A DNA stretch of 64,000 nt from Salpingoeca rosetta (Eukaryota > Protista > Choanoflagellata): positions 2,473,970-2,537,969 of the forward strand of contig JAWQFM010000003.1 in the NCBI GenBank assembly GCA_033442325.1. Reading direction: 5' to 3'. Shown one piece after another: positions 5,064-33,364 of the stretch. Both the position numbers and the translations under genes were made by a program. The number at the start of each line of letters is the position of its first letter. Positions within the stretch are counted from its first letter, which is position 1. The notes under the pieces were generated by a model. The model did not search any database. It saw only the letters and a list, made by a program, of their open reading frames with translations, and was not told the origin of the DNA.

Positions 5064-9129
<4,066 letters not shown>

Positions 9130-21377: not shown

Positions 21378-21848
21378 CGTGTGTGCGTGCGCACTCACGG
21401 GTCTGCCCAGCACGACAATACAGCAACAACTGCAACAACACCCGCAACAACTGCAACAACACCGCAATGGCTTGCTGAATCAATTGAGCGTATGCCCGTG
21501 GTACGGTGGCTCTTCTCTTTTACCCCTTCTGGCTTCTCCTGTTGTTCTGCTGTTGCGTTGGCCGAGGGATCCCAACACCAAGCACAGCGCTGGCGTGTGC
21601 GTTGTGTGGGTGGCAAAGACGCAAAGACGCAAACAAGCACCCGGCTGGCTGGTGATGGAGGACAGGCAAGCACAAAAGCGCAATCCTGAAAATTAGTTGA
21701 AGATTTACATAAAACACGCAGCTACGACTCCCACACCAGGCGATCGACCCAAACGCACACACATCGCGGCGTGCTGTGCTGCGGTGGTGGTGCTGTGCTC
21801 TGTGTGTGAGAGGTAGTGAGTGGTGTTTGAGCGTGGCTGTGTGGAAGG

Positions 21849-24800
21849 ATGCAGCAGCAGCAGGAGCGGCGTGGTTGTTCTCGTCGTCGCTATGATGGGC
21901 GGCGGCGAAGGCACCACCGCCGATTCCATGTGGCTGCGCTTGTGCTGGCCATAACGGCAGTGTTCGTGACGCTGGCACAGCTGCACGGTGACGGTGTGCT
22001 GGTTGGTGTTGTCGGTGCATCAACGACAACACCTACTACGACAACTACACCTACAACCACATCTACGACAACTACAACCACAACTACAACCACCACCACC
22101 ACAAGTTCCACTGCAAATACAACTACCACAACCCACACCACCACAACGACAACACCTACTACGACAACTACACCTACGACAACTACAACCACAACTACGA
22201 CAACTACAACCACAACTACAACCACCACCACAACAAGAGGACCAATTCCTGTCAGTTGCCACTGCCAACCATTTCTGTCATGCCCTCAGTACAACATCAC
22301 GATCGTTTCTCACAGTGCTGTATTGTTGTGACCTTGGATTGCTGCTGTTGTGCTGACAGGAGTTTATCGGCCTTCCCGAAAATGCAACAGTGGAGCGTGG
22401 CGCAACCTTCACATTTCCCACCCCGACTGTGATCTTGGATGACAAGGACGTCAACCTGACCTACACCATCGAGGGTGCAAACGCGGTGCGTTTTGTGTGC
22501 GTGCGCGTGTGCATTTCGGGGTGGGCACTTTCAAGCATGGCTGCTTTCGTGCTTGCCTGCAGTGACAGCTACATGCTTGTGCTGCGTGTTTGCTTCACTT
22601 TGTGCAAGCCATGTGTGTATGAGAGAGTGTGTGTGTGTGCGTGTTTGCTTCACTTTGTACAAGCCATGTGTGCTTGTGCGAACCTGTTGCTGTACTCCTC
22701 CCCCCCTCTCGTCTAACACCTTCTTTATACGCGTGCGCAACCACGCAGGTTGACACATCGCGGCGTGCGGGTACAACGTTCTCGCTCGAGTATATTACCG
22801 AGGACTCGGATGGAGAGGTTGGCAGACACATCCTCACCCTCACCATCGTGGACACGCAGCCGCCGCGCCTGGTGTGGATCGGCGGCAACGGCACGCTGAC
22901 ACACGAGGCAGGAACGCCCTTCGACTACGCATCATCGCTCGTGCGTGCATACGATAACGGTGATGGCGTGACAATTGAGCTGCCCACCATCAATATCCTC
23001 CCACCGTCCGTTCCAGACCAGCAACCCATCACCTTTGGCGTCGTTGATGCGGCCGGCCTCCACGGCAACTACATCACCCGCAACATCACCATCGTGGACA
23101 CACTACCGCCTGTTGTCACAGCACCGCAACCGCTCGTGCTGCCCATGGCGGAGGCCGGCAACGTCGCGGCATACCTCCAGTCAACAGACCTCTACGCTGG
23201 TGACGTGAGCGACCTTATCTCCGTCGATCAAGCGGCCATCCCGGCCGTGTTCGCGTCGTCCCCAACAGTCGTTGATGTCCTGTTTGATGCTCCCGACACT
23301 GCAGGCAACAGCGTCAACGGCACGGTGACCGTTCGGTTTCTCGATCAGACACCGCCCACCATCGTCTTCAACTCCACGTTTGTGGACGAGGACGCCACCA
23401 CCGCCAACCAAACCCACATTGTCCTGCCCTCGCTCACCCCTCCACTGGACATGATTGCGGACGTACTGGACAACGTGGCCGCTCCAACCAACGCCCCCTC
23501 GCTCATCGTGGTGCGTCGGCCCACCATTCCCCTAATCACGTGTGGTGCTGCCGCCACGGCCGTTGCCAACGCGTGGAGGGGTACGCTGCCCAATCCGGAC
23601 CCGCGCGCGGCCTCGTCGCTGATTGCCGTTGACGCCCCCAACGGCGCTGCGTACAGCGTGGACGTCACTGTCTCCGATGCTGCGGGCAACGAAGCCGTGG
23701 CGAGCGTGGTGCTTGAGTACGCCGACCACACCCCGCCCAATCTCACGCTGCTGGGCGAGACGAGGGTGGTGCTGGACCTCCCTACCTCCTTTGTTGAGGC
23801 TGGCGCCGTTGCATTTGACAACCGCCTCTTCAACGACGTCCTCATATGCGCACATGTTGACCGCTTTGAGCACGTCGCTGACGCAAGCGCATGCAGCCTT
23901 GCCAACGTGACTGTGGTCGCCAGCAGTGACAGTGGGAACGGCGGCGGCGAGAATGGCAGTGATGGCGGTGGTGTTGGTGCTGCTATGGTGCGGTTGTCTG
24001 GCGCCGACCCTGGCGCGAGTGGCGGGCTGGAGGTGTTGCAAATCGGGTTGCAGCCGCAGGAGTGCTTCGTCGTCACATACACGGCTGACGACGGCGTACA
24101 GACCACGACACGCAGGCGGGTGGTGTATGCAAAGGACACACAGCCTCCAACCGTGTTCCTGCAAGGCGAAAAGTACGTGCAGGTGGCATATGCGCACGTG
24201 TTTGTGGACCCCGGCGCGTTTGCGCTAGATGCGGTGGAGGGCGTGCTGCAAGCGAGCGTGCATGACACCGTTGACCGATTCCAGGTTGGCGTGTACACGG
24301 TGCGATACGAGGCGGTGGACAGCAGCGGTAACAGCAACTACGAAGACCGGCAGGTGGAGGTGCTGCCCCTTCGCTCGTACACGGGCATGCTACGGCTTGT
24401 TCTTCGCCTGGCCACCAGCAGCGATGGCAACAGTGGTGGTCTTGATGGTGGTGGTCTTGGTGGTCTTGGTGGGGACGTGTTGAATGCAACACGTATTGAG
24501 CAGGTGCTGGCGTCACAGCTGGCTGTGGAGCACGCAATTGTGCTCACGCTGCGCAGCAATGCCACTGCCACAGACAGCTTTGACGATGCATTCAACATCC
24601 GCAACCCGTTTGCTGCTGTGAACAACAGCAGCGGCCGTGCTGGTGCTGGTGCATCAAGCGATGAAGGGGGAGGGGCAGCCCGACGAAGACGGCAACAACA
24701 GCAACAACAGCTGCAGCAAGGACATGGCTGGGTGCAGCGGCGTGCTGCTGATGGTGATGATGTCGTTGCGATTACGGATGTGCTGTTCCTGGATGACACA

Positions 24801-26231
24801 CTCACGCCCATCCATGAGGTGGATGTTGCCGCTGCAATCGCCAACCTGCCATCCAACGCGGCAGGCGTGTCTGTTGTCAGTGCCACTGCCCTGGCGACTG
24901 TGCTGCCGCCACTGGAGATACCGACAACGGCCACCCCACTACAGTCGACAGCATCGACAACAGTGACGAGTCGGGGCAGCACGTCCGTCGCCCTGACCAC
25001 CACAACGCCGACAACAACGACCACGGACAGCCAGCAAGGGAGTGGCAGTGGTGCTGGCGCGGACGAACAGGTGCAGCTGGGCATCATCGTTGGGGTTGCG
25101 GCTGGCGCGGGTCTGGTGGTGATTGTGGTTGCTGTTGTAGTGGTGCGCATGTGTCGACGGCGCCGCGTTGCTGTGCGATATGCGCCCGGCACGAGTGGCC
25201 CGTTTGCCTTTGACAAGGAGGTGGTCACGCTGCACGACAACCCCGTGTTTGTTCGCCGCGACAGCAGAGCGTCCCGCCACAGCGTCTCTGCGAATGGCAC
25301 GGCGAGCAGCGACGGTGTACGTGCAGGTGCAGGTGCAAGTGCAAGCCGGGCATACATGGAGCCAGCTGCCACCCGCGAGTACGAGGTGCCCGTGCCTGCA
25401 GGCACGATGCATATGAGCGGCAACGCGCGCCAAGGGGCAGGCATGGGCAGCGACAGAACGTACATGCAGCCAGTGGCACGCACTGGTGCAAGTGGTGGAA
25501 ACAGCGGGATGGGCGATGATGCAGCAAGCCTGCGGCTGTCGCAACAGGGCAGTGCACGCTCGCGCTCCGGTCTCGGAAGCGTGGACGCGCGCGTGTACAT
25601 GCAGCCTGTTGCAACGACGGCTGCGCCGCGGGGTGTCAGAAGCCGCACCACCACGCAGACGCGCACTGAGAGTGGTGGCGATGGTGGTGATGACGATGCA
25701 TATGCGGCGCTTGATGGGACGCAGAGGACCTACGACGCCACAGATACCGTGTTGGCAGCATGCGGTGGCGGCGGTGGTGGTGGCCGTGATCATGCTCGCG
25801 ACCGTGGTGGCAGCCACGATGACAGTGAAGCGACCGGGCGCCGTGCAACGCGGCGACTGCCATCGATACGGCGCAATGGCGGTGGCGGTGATGAAATGGT
25901 GACGGGGACATCCACGCCCTGGTTCCATCCCCACCTCGATCGCATGGGTGCGGAGCAGCAGCTGCGTGAGGCTGGCGGTGTGCAAGGAATGTTTTTGGTG
26001 CGCCTGCGAGCGCAGAGTGGAGATGCATACACATCGTACGCGCTCTCCGTTATGACAGACGGGCGTGTGCTACACCACTTGCTTGTGCGCACGCCTGATG
26101 GGTTTACCGTGAATGGCGCTGCGCTTGTTCCCGCGTGTCGCTCCTTGCCTGCGCTGGTGGAGCGACTCATGCTACCAAACCCGACAGGCGTCCTCCTCAC
26201 CCGCCCCTGCCTGTGCGAGGTGGATGTGTGA
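21849..26231 (+). CDS. Type I membrane receptor: signal peptide, Thr-rich mucin stretch, HYR/DUF5011-like Ig repeats, TM helix, Tyr-motif tail and C-terminal SH2 (3 exons, ~1336 aa)
   Basis: Exons 21849-22250, 22360-22485, 22749-26231. Repeats start D[TQH]x[PP] (DTQPP, DTLPP, DQTPP, DHTPPNLTLLG, DTQPPTVFLQG...FVDPGAFALDAVEG..YTVRYEAVDSSGN). TM is LGIIVGVAAGAGLVVIVVAVVVV followed by RMCRRRR. SH2 reads PWFHPHLDRMGAEQQL...GMFLVR...YALSV...VLHHL. Confidence 0.88.
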
Positions 26232-26249
26232 TGAGTTGGAAGCTTTGTT

Positions 26250-26280
<31 letters not shown>

Positions 26281-26959
26281 CTGTGTCTGTGTCTGTGTCT
26301 GTGTATGTGTATGTGTGTATGTGTGTGTATCTGCGTGTCTGTCGGCGTGTGTCTCTGTGTCTCTGTCTGTGTGTCTGTCTGTGTGTCTGTGTGTGTGTCT
26401 GTGTGTGTGTCTGTGTGTGTGTCTGTGTGTGTGTGTGTGTGTGTGCATGCGTGTGCGTGTGTTTGCAGATGCGTTCCTCCGTCCCCTGCCCCTTGTCTTC
26501 ATCCAGCCCTCCCCCGCCACTTGCCTGTGTCTCTTGTTTTGTACATTACGCGTTCTGAAAAGACCATAGGCACTATGCAACCGCCACACACGTTGATGTG
26601 TGGCACTGGCGCTTTGTTTGTTGACCACCGTGTTGGGTTTGGCATGCTGGTGCATGTTGCTGTGCTGCCTGCAGCACAGCATGTGTTGTGGCACTTTGCG
26701 TTTGCCTCGATGCGTGTACTCTCGTTGTACCTGACTTGGCTTTGCCTGCTTACTTTGGCATGCGTTTCCTTCTTCATTGCTTCATTGCTTCATTGCTTGC
26801 TTCATTGCTTGCTCTTTCTTTCCATTGTGACACCTCGTTCATTTTTGTTTGTGTCTTGCTGAAAGGAAGAAGACGACGAAGAAGCAGCACAAACAACAAG
26901 CAACAAGAACAAGAACGACAAGCCACCACACACACGACCACACATCACAGACTGCGACG

Positions 26960-29032: not shown

Positions 29033-29226
29033 CGTCCCTCCCTTCTCTCCATCTGGCACACCAGCAAACGAAACAGCAGCAGCAGCAACGTCGTGTGTGT
29101 CGGTTGGTTGGATATGGGGTGAGGCGAATGAATTGATGAGTCACCATTCGCTTGTTGTTGACATTCTTGGCGTTTGTTGTTTGCTTGCCCTCGACCAACA
29201 ACGAACACGAACGACGAACAGCGACG

Positions 29227-31362
29227 ATGAGTGAGCGAGGGAAGGAGAAGACGCACGGCGTGTTCCAGTGCCTCTATCGCGGGTTCATCCACACAGATTC
29301 CCCGGACGGCAAGTCCATCCCTGGCGAGGCTGCCGTCCAGAAGGCTCACTCCATGCTCAGTCGCAAACGCATCAAGGTGGGCGAAGAGTGCTGGGGCAAG
29401 AGGGGGGGGGCACGGAAAGACGGAAGGAAGGACCAGGAAGGATGCTTTCAACAGCACACATTGTTGAGTGCACTGCTGGAAAGATCACCACCACTGTATG
29501 CTTGTATTTGTTGTGGCGTTGCCGTCAAGAGGACTGGGTGTTATCAGCAAGGCAAGGAACGGGGGCACATCGCCCTTGCCGTGTGTGGTCGATTGGGGCC
29601 TCCTGTGTAGTGTGCATCGAAAGATCTCCTCTCACCCCTTTCGTCTCACTTTGTCTTGCGCACTGTAGAAAACCCGAAAGCTACACCCGCTCTTCGGCCG
29701 CGGCTTTGACACGCCGCTGCTTATGACCGTCAGTTACCATCTCGCCCGCGGCGCGCGCATGTGTGTGTGTGTGTGCCTACTGTGCCCTGGAGTTTCCCGC
29801 ATGACAACTACAACAGCCGTGCCCTTTGTCCCCTTCCTGACATTTCGTTGCGGCGTGCATGCACGCAACTCCGTTGCTCCCTCGATCCCTGTTTCATGCC
29901 GTGCAGATCCAGTCCGGTGCCGTGCGCGTCGATCTGCCAAGCGATGGGAAGACGCAGGGTGCAGTCGTCATGAACTGCCAGCTGCATAAGGTACGTTGAA
30001 TGGTCTCGGATGATCTCAAGTGTCCCACCAGCCACTGTCGCAGTGACGTCTCGCTGTTCGCTTTGTGTTGGTTCCCTTGGTGTATCCCTTTTGGGCTACG
30101 TGGTTTCGTGGTCATTGCCGAGCGCCAGCGACTGCACACAGCTACTAACAGCTGTGCTGCTGGTTTCTTTTCAACTTGCGCCACCACCCCTCGGCTGTGT
30201 TTGCTCATGCCCAACTGCACGGCGACTCCGCCACGTGACGCCAACCACACCAGATTGCGTTCATCAGCCACGTTGCCAATGCGGTCGGCATTGTGGTGAA
30301 GCGGCCGGGCAACGGCAAGTTCAAGTGCCATCTCTTTCTTCTCGACGACGAGGACGGGGTAAGCCAAACGCTTGTCAACAGCAACTCAAAGCAGCAGCAG
30401 ACAAACACACAAAGAAGCATACAAGCAAGCAAACACGTGGGTGAAGCGGCTACTCGTTCTTCATATTCACGCTCTGCTCTTCCTTTCCCCCCGGCGTTGA
30501 TTGCGTTGCCACATCGTGCTTGCAGGCAGTGGAAGTGTGCCGATTGCTCAAGAAGGTGACCAACGAAGCGTTCAATAGGGTAAGTCGGTTCTATGACTTG
30601 CCGTGACACGCTTTTTTGTCTCCGCTTGCAAAACAGTTCATGTTTTTCAGCCACAGCTGTTGCTTCGTTGTATATGCGCGCTTCTCACGCGTGCGTGTGC
30701 TGTGTGCGGTGTCCCTGCGTGATGTGATTGCTGCTCAGCTTCGTCGAGTGAGCTGCCGCCTGCGCAGTAAGCAAATCAAGGAGGGTCCACCGGCTGTTGC
30801 AACACGCAAACCTTCGCTGGCAGATGAAGATCAGCCGTGGTGAGGAGATTGCGCCCGCTCGTGTTGCTGTTGGCTGTTTGCTGTGTGTTGCAGCGCTCCG
30901 TCGTGGCTTGCTCCAATTGCCTCGTGCCTGCAGGCAACAGGACATTCGTGTCCATCGCCATTGTTTTGTATTCTAACCACTATTCGAGTCTAACCACTGC
31001 CAACTGTGTCTACATTGCACATCTCACCACAAGGTTTCACGGGCCCTTGTCACGTGCGCACGCTGAAGATATTTTGCAAGACTATGCAGCAATTGATGGC
31101 CTCTTTCTTGTTCGCCAACGTGAAGGGTATGTATGTACTTGTGCGTGTGTGTGCTCGTGTGTGGATGTGCGCGCGCGTGTGTGTGTGTGGAGGGGGTGTG
31201 CGTGCGTGTGTACTCGTGAGAGAGTGTGTGTGTATGTGTGTGTGTGTGTGTACTCGTGAGAGAGAGAGAGAGTGTGTGTGTGTGTGTGTGTGTGCTCGTG
31301 TGCAAATATCCCCCGCTTTTTTTTTGTTTGGGGGGGGGGGGTGCGTGCGTGTGTCGTCGTGA

Positions 31363-31432
<70 letters not shown>

Positions 31433-32294
31433 AAAGCGTGCAGCATGTCATGGCTTGATTTATTCAGTGCATCGCATCACTTACTCCGTTGCTTTCGTGA
31501 ACTCAACATCTCACTCACATATGCGTGCAGCAAAGAGAATGAGTTTGCTATCAGCTTTGTGGTCGGCGGCATGGTGTTCCACAATCGTGTGGAACGCAAC
31601 AAAGAGGGTGCGTCCTGGGTGGTGTGTCTTCCTTGCTTGCACATCATGTCGTTGCCTGCATGCATTGTGAGTTCGCTTGTTCTTCAGTGCTCATTGCCCG
31701 CTACGTCAACATGCTGCGCTCACAAATGAATCGAATCCTATCCAGGGCTCTACGTCAACAGCAAAGGCACCGTATTTCCCAGTCTGCGGTAAGTTACGAG
31801 CTGCAACAACGCAAAGCAAAACTCAACCAGTGGCGCAACGGGGCGCCATGTTGCGTATTCCACAGCAGTGACTCTTAAGATTGCGTGTGTTTGCACACAC
31901 GCATGCGACGATGCACACAAACATTTTCGTGCAACACACGCACGCACACGCACGCACGCACGCACGCATGCACAAACACGCACGCACGCTCATACATGCA
32001 ACTCATGTACACACGCTGCAGGATCATGATTTCTGAGTACCAGAATCGCCATCCTGACATGCAGTGCATCCTCACGGAATTTGTTCCTCGGGACCGCGTT
32101 GGCGGAGGTGAGCCCATGTGACATCACACTTTTGAACGTCTTGGGGGCTGCACCCTGTTCCCAAACCCAATGTCCATGCCATTGTCCCAATATCATTGCT
32201 GTGGAATGTTGCCGCTTTGGTTGCGCAGGTGTATGTGCGTGTTTCACGACAACAGCCATCGTAGCAAAGACGCTCACCATTACGCGCCGTTTCT

Positions 32295-32362
<68 letters not shown>

Positions 32363-32533
32363 GTTTCGCAGGGGTGGAGTATGCCAACGCGGCTGTCATT
32401 AATCAAGCACGCAAGACGGTATGTACAAGGGGTAGAATACAAAGAGAACAGGATGAGAGGGGCAAACACAAGCGACAGAGCATATCCAACCCACAACGGC
32501 AACGTCTCACCCACCTGCTTTGTGTGCGTGCGT

Positions 32534-32629
<96 letters not shown>

Positions 32630-33348
32630 GCGTGCAGAAGAAGCAGGCGTCGTTCTCGCGGTGGAGCGAATCGGATGTGCGGCAGGTGCTGGAGAACCTC
32701 GACCAGCTTGATCTCGACGGCGACGATGCACCGCAGGACGACACGCCAAAGGTCGAGGACCTCAAGGTGAGCGTGTGTAGATGTGTGTGCGTGTGTAGAT
32801 GTGTGAGCGTGTGTAGATGTGTGTGCGTGTGTAGATGTGTGTGTGCGTTGTGTGCGTTGTGTGTGTGTGATTATTCCTCGCCTCTTACTTGTGCTTATTC
32901 TCCTTGCCCTATTCCCCTCGCTTGCCACTCGCCGTTCAACAACGCAACTGTTGCCTGCAGGTGGCACCCTCTGACGTGCAATTTGACCCCATTTTCGATG
33001 ACGTTCGCTTCGGGTATGTGGACTCGGTCGTATGGTCACACCGCACTGTTCCTCAAGGCTTCCAGTGTGTCCCTCTCACAATACTTTGCTTGCAAGCACT
33101 GGACATTGCTTTGAGCACCTGCATGCCACCATTACGCACACGTGCTCTCGCCTTGCCAGTCATTCCGCGATGTACCATGGCTCTTTCTGCTCTCTTTTTG
33201 TGCTTGCAGATTCGGCAACGAGTTTGTGTCGCTTGTGATGAGTGGAAACACCGAAGTGATTGAACCGTCAGAGGATGTGAACTTGGACAGCGAGTGCTTT
33301 GATCTCTCGTCCATGATGACCCACCTCGACCAAGAGGACGAGTGCTGA
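29227..33348 (+). CDS. PTB + SH2 adaptor protein (Shc-like domain order) with acidic C-terminal tail (~14 exons)
   Basis: PTB-like region: VFQCLYRGFI..., LHKIAFIS...IVVKRPGNGKFKCHLFLLDDEDGAVEVCRLLKKVTNEAF. SH2: QPWFHGPLSRAHAEDIL...GLFLVRQRE..FAISFV...VFHNRVE...MISEYQ...ILTEFVP. Tail includes EYAN and ends HLDQEDEC* at 33348. Confidence 0.85.
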
Positions 33349-33364
33349 TCATGCGTATGCTGTG

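Follow-up and report, generated by a model that had tools for sequence, protein, structure and literature searches.

If a receptor carries a phosphotyrosine (pTyr) reader of its own, contains no kinase, and displays an array of tyrosine motifs in its tail, which protein reads those motifs? The question is raised by a protein-coding gene at positions 21849-26231, on the + strand, of a 64,000-nt stretch of the genome of the choanoflagellate Salpingoeca rosetta (contig JAWQFM010000003.1, C3 in our numbering; the whole stretch is referred to below as the window). The answer that we favor, with a probability of roughly 0.55, is that the gene product is a receptor-scaffold, kinase-less and crossing the membrane once, from a family that combines a DUF5011 ectodomain, a transmembrane (TM) helix, cytosolic YxxP motifs, and an SH2 domain, and that its tail is read in trans. 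Choanoflagellates exceed most animals in tyrosine kinases, phosphatases, and SH2 domains, and receptors in which a pTyr reader takes the place of a writer are, to our knowledge, not employed by animals. Be the protein a docking scaffold, a split receptor, or a self-clustering switch, the answer would show the role of pTyr signaling before multicellularity. As an expressed gene that consists mostly of one large exon, with four near-identical sites and one SH2 domain, the gene offers a clear-cut test in a species amenable to genetics, and the candidate trans-readers Crk and Vav have already been cloned or identified.

The predicted protein opens with a leader, first basic and then hydrophobic, and a mucin tip of poly-Thr; six Ig-like repeats of the HYR/DUF5011 type, a juxtamembrane module, and a stalk rich in Thr lead to a single TM helix, after which a disordered tail of 258 aa ends in the SH2 domain. 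It is encoded by three exons (21849-22250, 22360-22485, and 22749-26231), and its length of ~1336 aa is the sum of the exon lengths (134 + 42 + 1160); domain searches were done exon by exon, full-length numbering is arithmetic, and the residue numbers of the TM helix, tail, and SH2 domain given below are those within exon 3. The RNA evidence comprises raw reads of two stranded RNA-seq runs, together with two RNA contig sets, aligned to positions 21600-26400 (4801 nt). A 3698-nt RNA contig from each of two independent studies covers 22202-22250, 22360-22484, and 22748-26237 with both introns skipped, and over 22748-26237, a stretch that includes the TM helix, the tail, the SH2 domain, and the stop codon (26229..26231), both contigs are gapless. 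Because they are unbroken from the TM helix to the stop codon, and pass beyond it, the TM and SH2 segments belong to one mRNA, as an earlier note on this locus, made from the sequence alone, had assumed; the coordinates given in that note are correct as well, with the ATG at 21849 and the stop codon at 26229-26231.

Exon 1 (21849..22250) is an open reading frame (ORF) from an ATG, with RNA reads on the + RNA strand over 21922-22243; in the raw reads the first mate lies on the minus strand, the usual sign of + strand RNA. No ATG is present between about 21720 and 21848, and 21849 is the first one past the likely transcription start. Both introns are of the GT..AG type, with the donors GTCAGT at 22251 and GTGCGT at 22486, and the joints of both, that of intron 1 (22251..22359, 109 nt; joint 22250->22360) and that of intron 2 (22486..22748, 263 nt), were observed in raw reads and in the two contig sets. 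Exon 2 (22360..22485, 42 aa), seen in the spliced contigs, encodes the first half of Ig-like repeat 1, and its frame runs on from exon 1 and into exon 3. The RNA contigs break within the poly-Thr coding repeat, which correct-strand reads still cover, and end at 26237, where the (GT)n microsatellite of the 3' untranslated region begins. The expression level of the gene, as judged from RNA reads, is modest. In the public protein model P0001 (1028 aa), translation starts 307 residues late, at a Met inside exon 3 (nt 23145), and the leader, the mucin-like run, and more than two of the Ig repeats are missing, whereas RNA supports the two upstream exons; the corrected N-terminus (+307 residues) should be of use to those cloning the gene, together with the NPx[FY] motif and the paralog map described below.

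The cytoplasmic part begins after a single TM helix (aa 777-799, 25077..25145; Kyte-Doolittle 19-mer maximum 2.99), which is the sole such segment in exon 3, in line with the earlier claim of one helix, and which is followed by the stop-transfer sequence RMCRRRR. The tail of 258 aa is Gly/Ala/Arg/Ser-rich, of low complexity, and disordered in the AlphaFold2 prediction (predicted local distance difference test, pLDDT, <50). Four of its seven tyrosines stand in R-x-Y-[M/E]-x-P motifs, namely RAYMEP (Tyr 869, 25347..25364), REYEVP (Tyr 878, 25374..25391), RTYMQP (Tyr 905, 25455..25472), and RVYMQP (Tyr 950, 25590..25607), the last two each followed by V-A. Two more, in DAYAALD (Tyr 985) and RTYDAT (Tyr 995; both within 25701..25733), are not of the YxxP type, and the seventh stands in VRYAPG. 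All of the tail motifs quoted previously (RAYMEPAA, REYEVPVP, RTYMQPVA, RVYMQPVA, DAYAALD, and RTYDAT) are present; the seventh Tyr and the NPVF motif had been missed. Among 200,000 shuffles of the 258-aa tail, four or more YxxP arose 9 times, five or more RxY 94 times, and four or more RxYxxP 0 times; the four-fold R-x-Y-x-x-P array is non-random. The two YMQPVA copies (motifs 3 and 4) differ at two synonymous third codon positions alone, their flanks being unrelated, which may be taken as a slight indication that the peptide is under constraint.

These figures bear on the possibility that the gene encodes an adhesion or glycocalyx protein whose tail is vestigial, with tyrosines that would never be phosphorylated and an SH2 domain that would be inert or bind non-phosphorylated ligands. 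A low-complexity (Gly/Ala/Arg/Ser-rich), lineage-specific tail, for which neither a paralog nor an ortholog was found in the genome and word-index searches described below, is what such a protein might show, and the modest expression agrees with it. The array, however, appeared in none of the 200,000 shuffles, the YMQPVA copies differ at synonymous sites alone, and the SH2 domain keeps the three main pTyr-coordinating residues in a fold predicted with high confidence, so that we consider a vestigial tail highly improbable.

The SH2 domain occupies the C-terminal 105 residues of the protein, with coordinates aa 1058-1144 (25920..26180). It matches PF00017 with 35.6 bits (cut-off 21, E 9.8e-9), and in a six-frame scan of the genome (68 contigs, 55.4 Mb) the same domain was found with 41.2 bits at C3:2499889-2500131. 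A PDB sequence search returned the SH2 domains of ZAP-70, Syk, and SHP2 at 4e-10, the closest solved relatives being the C-SH2 domains of ZAP-70 and Syk and the N-SH2 domain of SHP2. AlphaFold2 assigns pLDDT values of 90-96 over the domain, with the helix-strands-helix order, and the top Foldseek matches are all SH2 domains (ZAP-70, Syk, PLCgamma1, Grb7, Vav2, and Monosiga brevicollis crka1; root-mean-square deviation 1.7-2.7 A over ~84 residues). The residues of the pTyr pocket were located in an alignment with the C-SH2 domain of ZAP-70 and with 25 S. rosetta SH2 domains: Arg alphaA2 (R1065, 25941-25943), Arg betaB5 of the FLVR motif (R1085, 26001-26003), and His betaD4 (H1109, 26073-26075) are all kept. 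By this alignment the pocket is intact, and pTyr binding is predicted; Pfam, the residue alignment, AlphaFold2, and Foldseek agree with the earlier call of a C-terminal SH2 domain with an intact FLVR.

The absence of a kinase or phosphatase domain, which had also been claimed, is upheld: Pfam finds neither in the ORF, and the RNA contig reaches the stop codon without a further exon. The protein is accordingly not a receptor tyrosine kinase (RTK), having no cytoplasmic kinase domain, and among the matches listed for PF07714 none falls inside the 64-kb window. In the genome as a whole at least 160 kinase-domain and 92 SH2 matches are available in trans, many of the kinases lying in long receptor-like open frames.

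Related receptors encoded elsewhere in the genome place these features in a family; several of the 92 SH2 matches close long receptor-like open frames. The receptor at locus L006 (C12:1071770-1075350) has the order DUF5011 - TM - three YDxP - two SH2 and is colinear with the studied protein over all six repeats (27% identity, E 6e-23) and the SH2 domain (E 3e-11). The two have in common the six-repeat DUF5011 ectodomain, the juxtamembrane module, the TM helix, an NPxF motif (NPLF in L006), and YxxP-type motifs, those of L006 being YDxP; L006 differs in its two SH2 domains, in the acidic character of its YDxP motifs, and in a juxtamembrane module without the RRRR or poly-Gln insertion. Its second SH2 domain is the nearest in the genome to the one studied here (39% identity, E 1.7e-9, within a range of 35-39%). 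The ectodomain also aligns with that of L007 (E 7e-18), which has the order DUF5011 - TM - YDVP/YEDV repeats - SH2 and contains DMYDVPR and DNMYDVPK, the motifs quoted for PTSG_05573 in PMC5043372. In the closest paralogs the SH2 domain is of the same type, whereas the motifs differ, being acidic and of the form YD[VKL]P. Receptor SH2 domains without a YxxP array are found in L001 (TNFR repeats - TM - two SH2) and in the cadherin-type L002-L004 (cadherin/VWD/EGF - TM - SH2). A tree of 26 S. rosetta SH2 domains resolves just the cadherin-receptor clade (98/97) and the pair of L006a and L007; the studied domain groups weakly with the SH2 domains of DUF5011/TNFR receptors (80/87), its nearest row being L024, a long branch from a multi-exon gene. 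Since the grouping is weak and L024 is long-branched, a receptor-specific SH2 clade, considered at one stage, was dropped.

The architecture has been known since 2016 and is not a new kind of receptor. In a search for pre-metazoan partners of the Crk SH2 domain, TM proteins with several cytosolic YxxP motifs were described in S. rosetta and M. brevicollis and regarded as likely Crk-SH2 docking receptors; three of them have DUF5011 or other ectodomains together with C-terminal SH2-like domains, whereas PTSG_12435/12436, F2UH22, and F2U6S2 carry YxxP arrays without SH2 (Shigeno-Nakazawa et al., 2016; PMC5043372). The same study demonstrated by isothermal titration calorimetry that the SH2 domain of M. 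brevicollis crka1 binds pYDVP peptides of PTSG_05573, and its Table S6 lists S. rosetta F2UMJ5 with four YxxP, one DUF5011, and one SH2. This is the feature set of the public model of the gene studied here, which suggests that the protein is very probably already listed as F2UMJ5. With one TM helix, four YxxP motifs in the tail, and an ectodomain that aligns with those of L007 and L006, it belongs to the YxxP-repeat TM family; it resembles PTSG_05573, A9V449, and A9VAL3 of that study in the single-pass TM, DUF5011, cytosolic YxxP motifs, C-terminal SH2 domain, and lack of a kinase. TM-SH2 proteins are a specialty of choanoflagellates, and the statement of the earlier note that they occur in this group and are functionally unstudied fits the type described in PMC5043372.

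Receptors of the cadherin/protocadherin-TM-SH2 type (L002-L004) are likewise kinase-less type I proteins with a membrane-proximal NPx[YF] and a C-terminal SH2 domain; they differ in the cadherin/VWD/EGF ectodomain, in an SH2 domain that belongs to a separate clade, and in having no YxxP array. MBCDH1 and MBCDH2 of M. brevicollis are reportedly cadherin-TM-SH2 receptors, as Abedin and King are said to have described in 2008. Richter et al. (2018; PMC6040629) point out, in Choanoeca perplexa, a protocadherin-TM-SH2 protein that is unique to a choanoflagellate.

The distribution of the two cytoplasmic modules speaks for the favored mechanism: YxxP arrays also occur in TM proteins without an SH2 domain, receptor SH2 domains also without a YxxP array, and the two therefore appear to be independent modules that are read or used in trans. 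Going beyond the architecture, the expression, and the motif statistics, we infer that the glycosylated ectodomain, i.e., the mucin tip and six Ig-like repeats, would engage an external ligand or surface, and that kinases encoded elsewhere, either Src-/Abl-type cytoplasmic kinases or neighboring receptor kinases, would phosphorylate the YxxP tyrosines of the tail. The resulting pYxxP sites would recruit soluble SH2 proteins in trans, Crk-type adaptors to pYxxP and Vav-type guanine nucleotide exchange factors to pYMEP, and could thereby link the receptor to Rho/Rac-type cytoskeletal control. The Crk protein of S. rosetta is PTSG_05410; Vav is also present in this species (PMC6562523), and the Vav SH2 domain belongs to group II, with Thr at betaD5 and pYMEP specificity (PMC2193212). 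The receptor's own SH2 domain may tether it to another pTyr partner, a kinase or a receptor tail, either stabilizing the complex or supporting processive phosphorylation, while NPVF near the membrane may bind a PTB or endocytic adaptor.

Overall, the protein would act as a transmembrane adaptor, similar to the p130Cas substrate domain or to LAT, to which a reader domain has been added. The likeness to p130Cas/BCAR1 is a functional analogy, a disordered YxxP array that docks Crk-/Nck-type SH2 domains once phosphorylated. The studied protein is not a member of that family: Pfam finds neither an SH3 nor a FAT-like C-terminal domain, there is no Ser-rich region, and the protein spans the membrane and carries its own SH2 domain. 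LAT, PAG/Cbp, and nephrin are also kinase-less, with Tyr motifs that are written by Src-family kinases, read by SH2 adaptors, and engaged in multivalent clustering; unlike the studied protein, they contain no SH2 domain, LAT and PAG have minimal ectodomains, and none of the three has a sequence relationship to it.

Several observations weigh against a trans-read scaffold of the published family. The motifs have Arg at -2 and Met or Glu at +1 (R-x-Y-[M/E]-x-P), whereas the sites tested with Crk are acidic YDxP sites of the form [D/E]-M-Y-D-V-P, and there are four of them here vs. ten there. The betaD5 residue of the SH2 domain is His, which lies outside the classical SH2 specificity groups, and for this reason the ligand of the domain is not predictable. 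None of the tail peptides appears in the supplementary data published with the p38 phosphoproteomics study of S. rosetta. The correspondence with F2UMJ5 was judged by matching features, not by accession, and F2UMJ5 was not found in a literature text search. Finally, word-index protein searches with the tail plus SH2 domain and with the SH2 domain alone returned the window's own protein as the sole match, although this kind of search needs shared 5-mers and a similar protein length and is no proof that orthologs are absent outside S. rosetta; the tail by itself found no paralog in a search of the S. rosetta genome.

The membrane-proximal part of the tail carries a further motif. The NPVF motif (HDNPVF, 25239..25250) is situated 32 aa past the TM helix, and NPx[FY] within 80 aa of the TM segment was found in seven of the eight related S. 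rosetta receptor tails, with a chance per tail of 0.7-2.9%. The tails that carry it include those of L001-L004, L006, and P0033 (PTSG_12379, a DUF5011-type receptor without an SH2 tail), so that the motif is combined with DUF5011, TNFR, and cadherin ectodomains and, in one case, with a tail devoid of SH2. NPx[FY]-type motifs are targets of PTB and endocytic adaptors, and at least 22 PTB matches were found in the PF00640 scan of the genome. The recurrence of NPx[FY] near the membrane suggests that these receptors share a site at which PTB or endocytic adaptors dock; this shared membrane-proximal NPVF is new in this analysis.

A layout of TM - NPx[FY] - SH2 that is common to cadherin, TNFR, and DUF5011 receptors hints at a docking logic independent of YxxP, as would be expected if the protein were a kinase-recruiting co-receptor. 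Its SH2 domain would then capture a pTyr-bearing kinase or an activated RTK, and the protein would form that subunit of a split receptor which binds the ligand, with the YxxP tyrosines as secondary substrates. An intact SH2 pocket, the lack of a kinase in the gene and, among the matches listed, in the window, and the at least 160 kinase-domain matches in the genome all accord with such a function. It leaves the precise keeping of four R-x-Y-x-x-P motifs unexplained, and it overlaps rather than excludes the trans-read scaffold; as a separate account of the locus we regard it as decidedly unlikely.

The earlier note had proposed that the receptor both displays and reads pTyr, i.e., that, once a separate kinase has phosphorylated them, its R-x-pY-M/E-x-P motifs are bound by the SH2 domain of the receptor itself. 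This could take place in cis, by closure of the tail as known for Crk pY221 and Src pY527, or in trans, through head-to-tail or branched homo-oligomers. Reader and motifs are indeed parts of one polypeptide and one transcript, the ~108 disordered residues that separate the last YxxP from the SH2 domain are enough for binding in cis, YxxP arrays and SH2 domains recur together in several divergent paralogs and M. brevicollis proteins, and the combination of unusual motifs (Arg at -2, Met at +1) with an unusual betaD5 His makes a private pairing conceivable. The comparison with Crk and Src extends to a YxxP or tail Tyr and an SH2 domain in one chain, but these are cytosolic proteins with one regulatory site, whereas four sites are located here 108-190 residues upstream of the SH2 domain. 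The pairing does not appear to be obligate, given that L001-L004 have SH2 domains without YxxP arrays and that published YxxP TM proteins lack SH2, and the paralog L006 pairs the most similar SH2 domains (35-39% identity) with acidic YDxP motifs. Furthermore, SH2 domains of the same His-His type are found in cytosolic multi-exon genes, e.g., in a gene on contig C10 that combines a PH-like segment with SH2, and soluble readers of the Crk and Vav type exist for such motifs. AlphaFold2 left the tail undocked (pLDDT <50) when tail and SH2 domain were modeled together, which counts for little, as phosphate is absent from the model.

We therefore consider self-reading unlikely, and consider still less probable its most elaborate form, a self-templating pTyr switch in which a betaD5-His SH2 domain tuned to its own R-x-pY-M/E-x-P would, after a single priming phosphorylation by a foreign kinase, turn monomers into SH2-linked branched homo-clusters or open a tail closed in cis. 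If true, it would amount to receptor-intrinsic clustering, with one reader and four sites per chain, that has no animal counterpart. What stands of the earlier interpretation is the kinase-less receptor with an SH2 domain of its own and non-random motifs in a single transcript, and it is the self-reading drawn from them, possible as it is, that did not find support. The trans-read receptor-scaffold accommodates the same features and is retained as the favored reading.

The extracellular part starts with a basic N-region of 27 aa from ATG 21849, followed by a hydrophobic leader or anchor (aa 28-57, 21930-22019) and a Thr/Pro/Ser mucin-like run of ~70 residues (aa 59-129, 22023-22235). A signal peptide had been proposed; the hydrophobic segment is there, but it is preceded by the strongly basic 27-aa stretch and might be either a cleaved leader or a signal-anchor. 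In both cases the repeats are outside and the SH2 domain is inside. The poly-Thr stalk of the earlier note likewise exists as a long run, but it sits at the distal N-terminal tip, and it is a shorter second Thr/Ser-rich stalk (24915..25076) that precedes the TM helix.

The remainder of the HYR/DUF5011 array, which comprises the second half of repeat 1 together with repeats 2-6, extends over 22749..24383, as defined by Pfam, a custom hidden Markov model (HMM), and the alignment with L006. Pfam detects PF16403 (DUF5011) in exon 3 at 7e-13 (48.9 bits, cut-off 27) and HYR (PF02494) at a borderline 1.3e-4 (22.7 bits vs. 21.7); when the segments were submitted separately, it recognized repeat 6, repeat 5 weakly and in part, and no other repeat. 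The custom HMM, built from 430 DUF5011 domains taken from database matches, finds six units, at exon-3 aa 10-30, 46-115, 145-195, 202-221+294-319, 333-358+440-455, and 471-538, with independent E-values, from the strongest to the weakest unit, of 4e-22, 6.5e-7, 4e-5, 6.7e-5, 1e-3, and 0.46, the last of these referring to just the exon-3 half of repeat 1, which is split by intron 2. All six units end in D-x-x-P-P (DTQPP 22851, DTLPP 23097, DQTPP 23343, DHTPP 23724, and DTQPP 24135 in the sequence), and insertions interrupt repeats 4 and 5. The HMM, the periodic D-x-x-P-P, and the colinearity with L006 thus bring the number of repeats to six, where at least five had been estimated. The top database matches of the ectodomain are bacterial DUF5011 proteins, e.g., myxobacterial ones, and S. 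rosetta PTSG_12379.

Between the repeats and the stalk lies a juxtamembrane extracellular module of ~180 aa (24384..24914) that aligns with L006, L007, and P0033 and has the secondary-structure pattern beta-alpha-beta ... beta-alpha-beta in common with them. It matched no Pfam family, an ESM Atlas feature search with it gave no lead (scores <0.8), and AlphaFold2 with the four-sequence alignment produced no confident model (pLDDT 33.6). RRRR (24681-24692) and a poly-Gln run are found in a loop of low complexity within the module. The RRRR may be a proprotein-convertase (furin) site within a SEA-like domain; this is a guess, consistent with a SEA-like, ferredoxin-like beta-alpha-beta-beta-alpha-beta order that fits the module and puts RRRR in a loop, while neither Pfam nor the Atlas lends it support. 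Polybasic counterparts of RRRR are GRRRR in P0033 and GRKRRR in L007, with none in L006.

PTSG_12379 is part of a recently expanded TNFR-DUF5011 receptor family, the members of which are 60-92% identical to it and occur with an SH2 tail (L007) or without one (P0033). The family is located at C13 (~760-781 kb), C15 (~923-928 kb), C26 (~298-302 and 448-451 kb), C9 (~1491-1499 kb), and C3 (~1048-1050 kb). SH2 domains with His-His at betaD4/betaD5 were also seen in the multi-exon, apparently cytosolic genes L026 (C16:1046485-1046817 + 1048790-1049005) and L027 (C10:898844-899500); among the loci of this type, one SH2 domain follows a PH-like segment (C10), and another locus has two SH2 exons.

Several RNA runs show a further joint, 24717->25762, both among their raw reads and in their contigs. 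It was rejected as an isoform, having AA..AT ends, five extra letters (GAGCG), a 22-nt anchor, and CAG repeats, and being out of frame; cross-mapping from another transcript is its most likely source. At 21600-21760, RNA reads lie on the opposite strand, and one RNA contig extends ~1.9 kb further upstream, which indicates that a divergent or overlapping minus-strand transcript abuts the 5' end of the gene. The neighboring + strand multi-exon gene (~29150-33350) contains a real SH2 exon at 31035-31133 (Pfam 1.1e-5 and the genome scan), whereas no PTB domain was detected in it by Pfam on its ORF pieces or by the PF00640 genome scan. A run of N, i.e., an assembly gap, interrupts long CAA/CAG and ACA repeats at ~7150-7290 of the window, the composition of which is 52-63% GC, with (GT)n/(CA)n microsatellites throughout.

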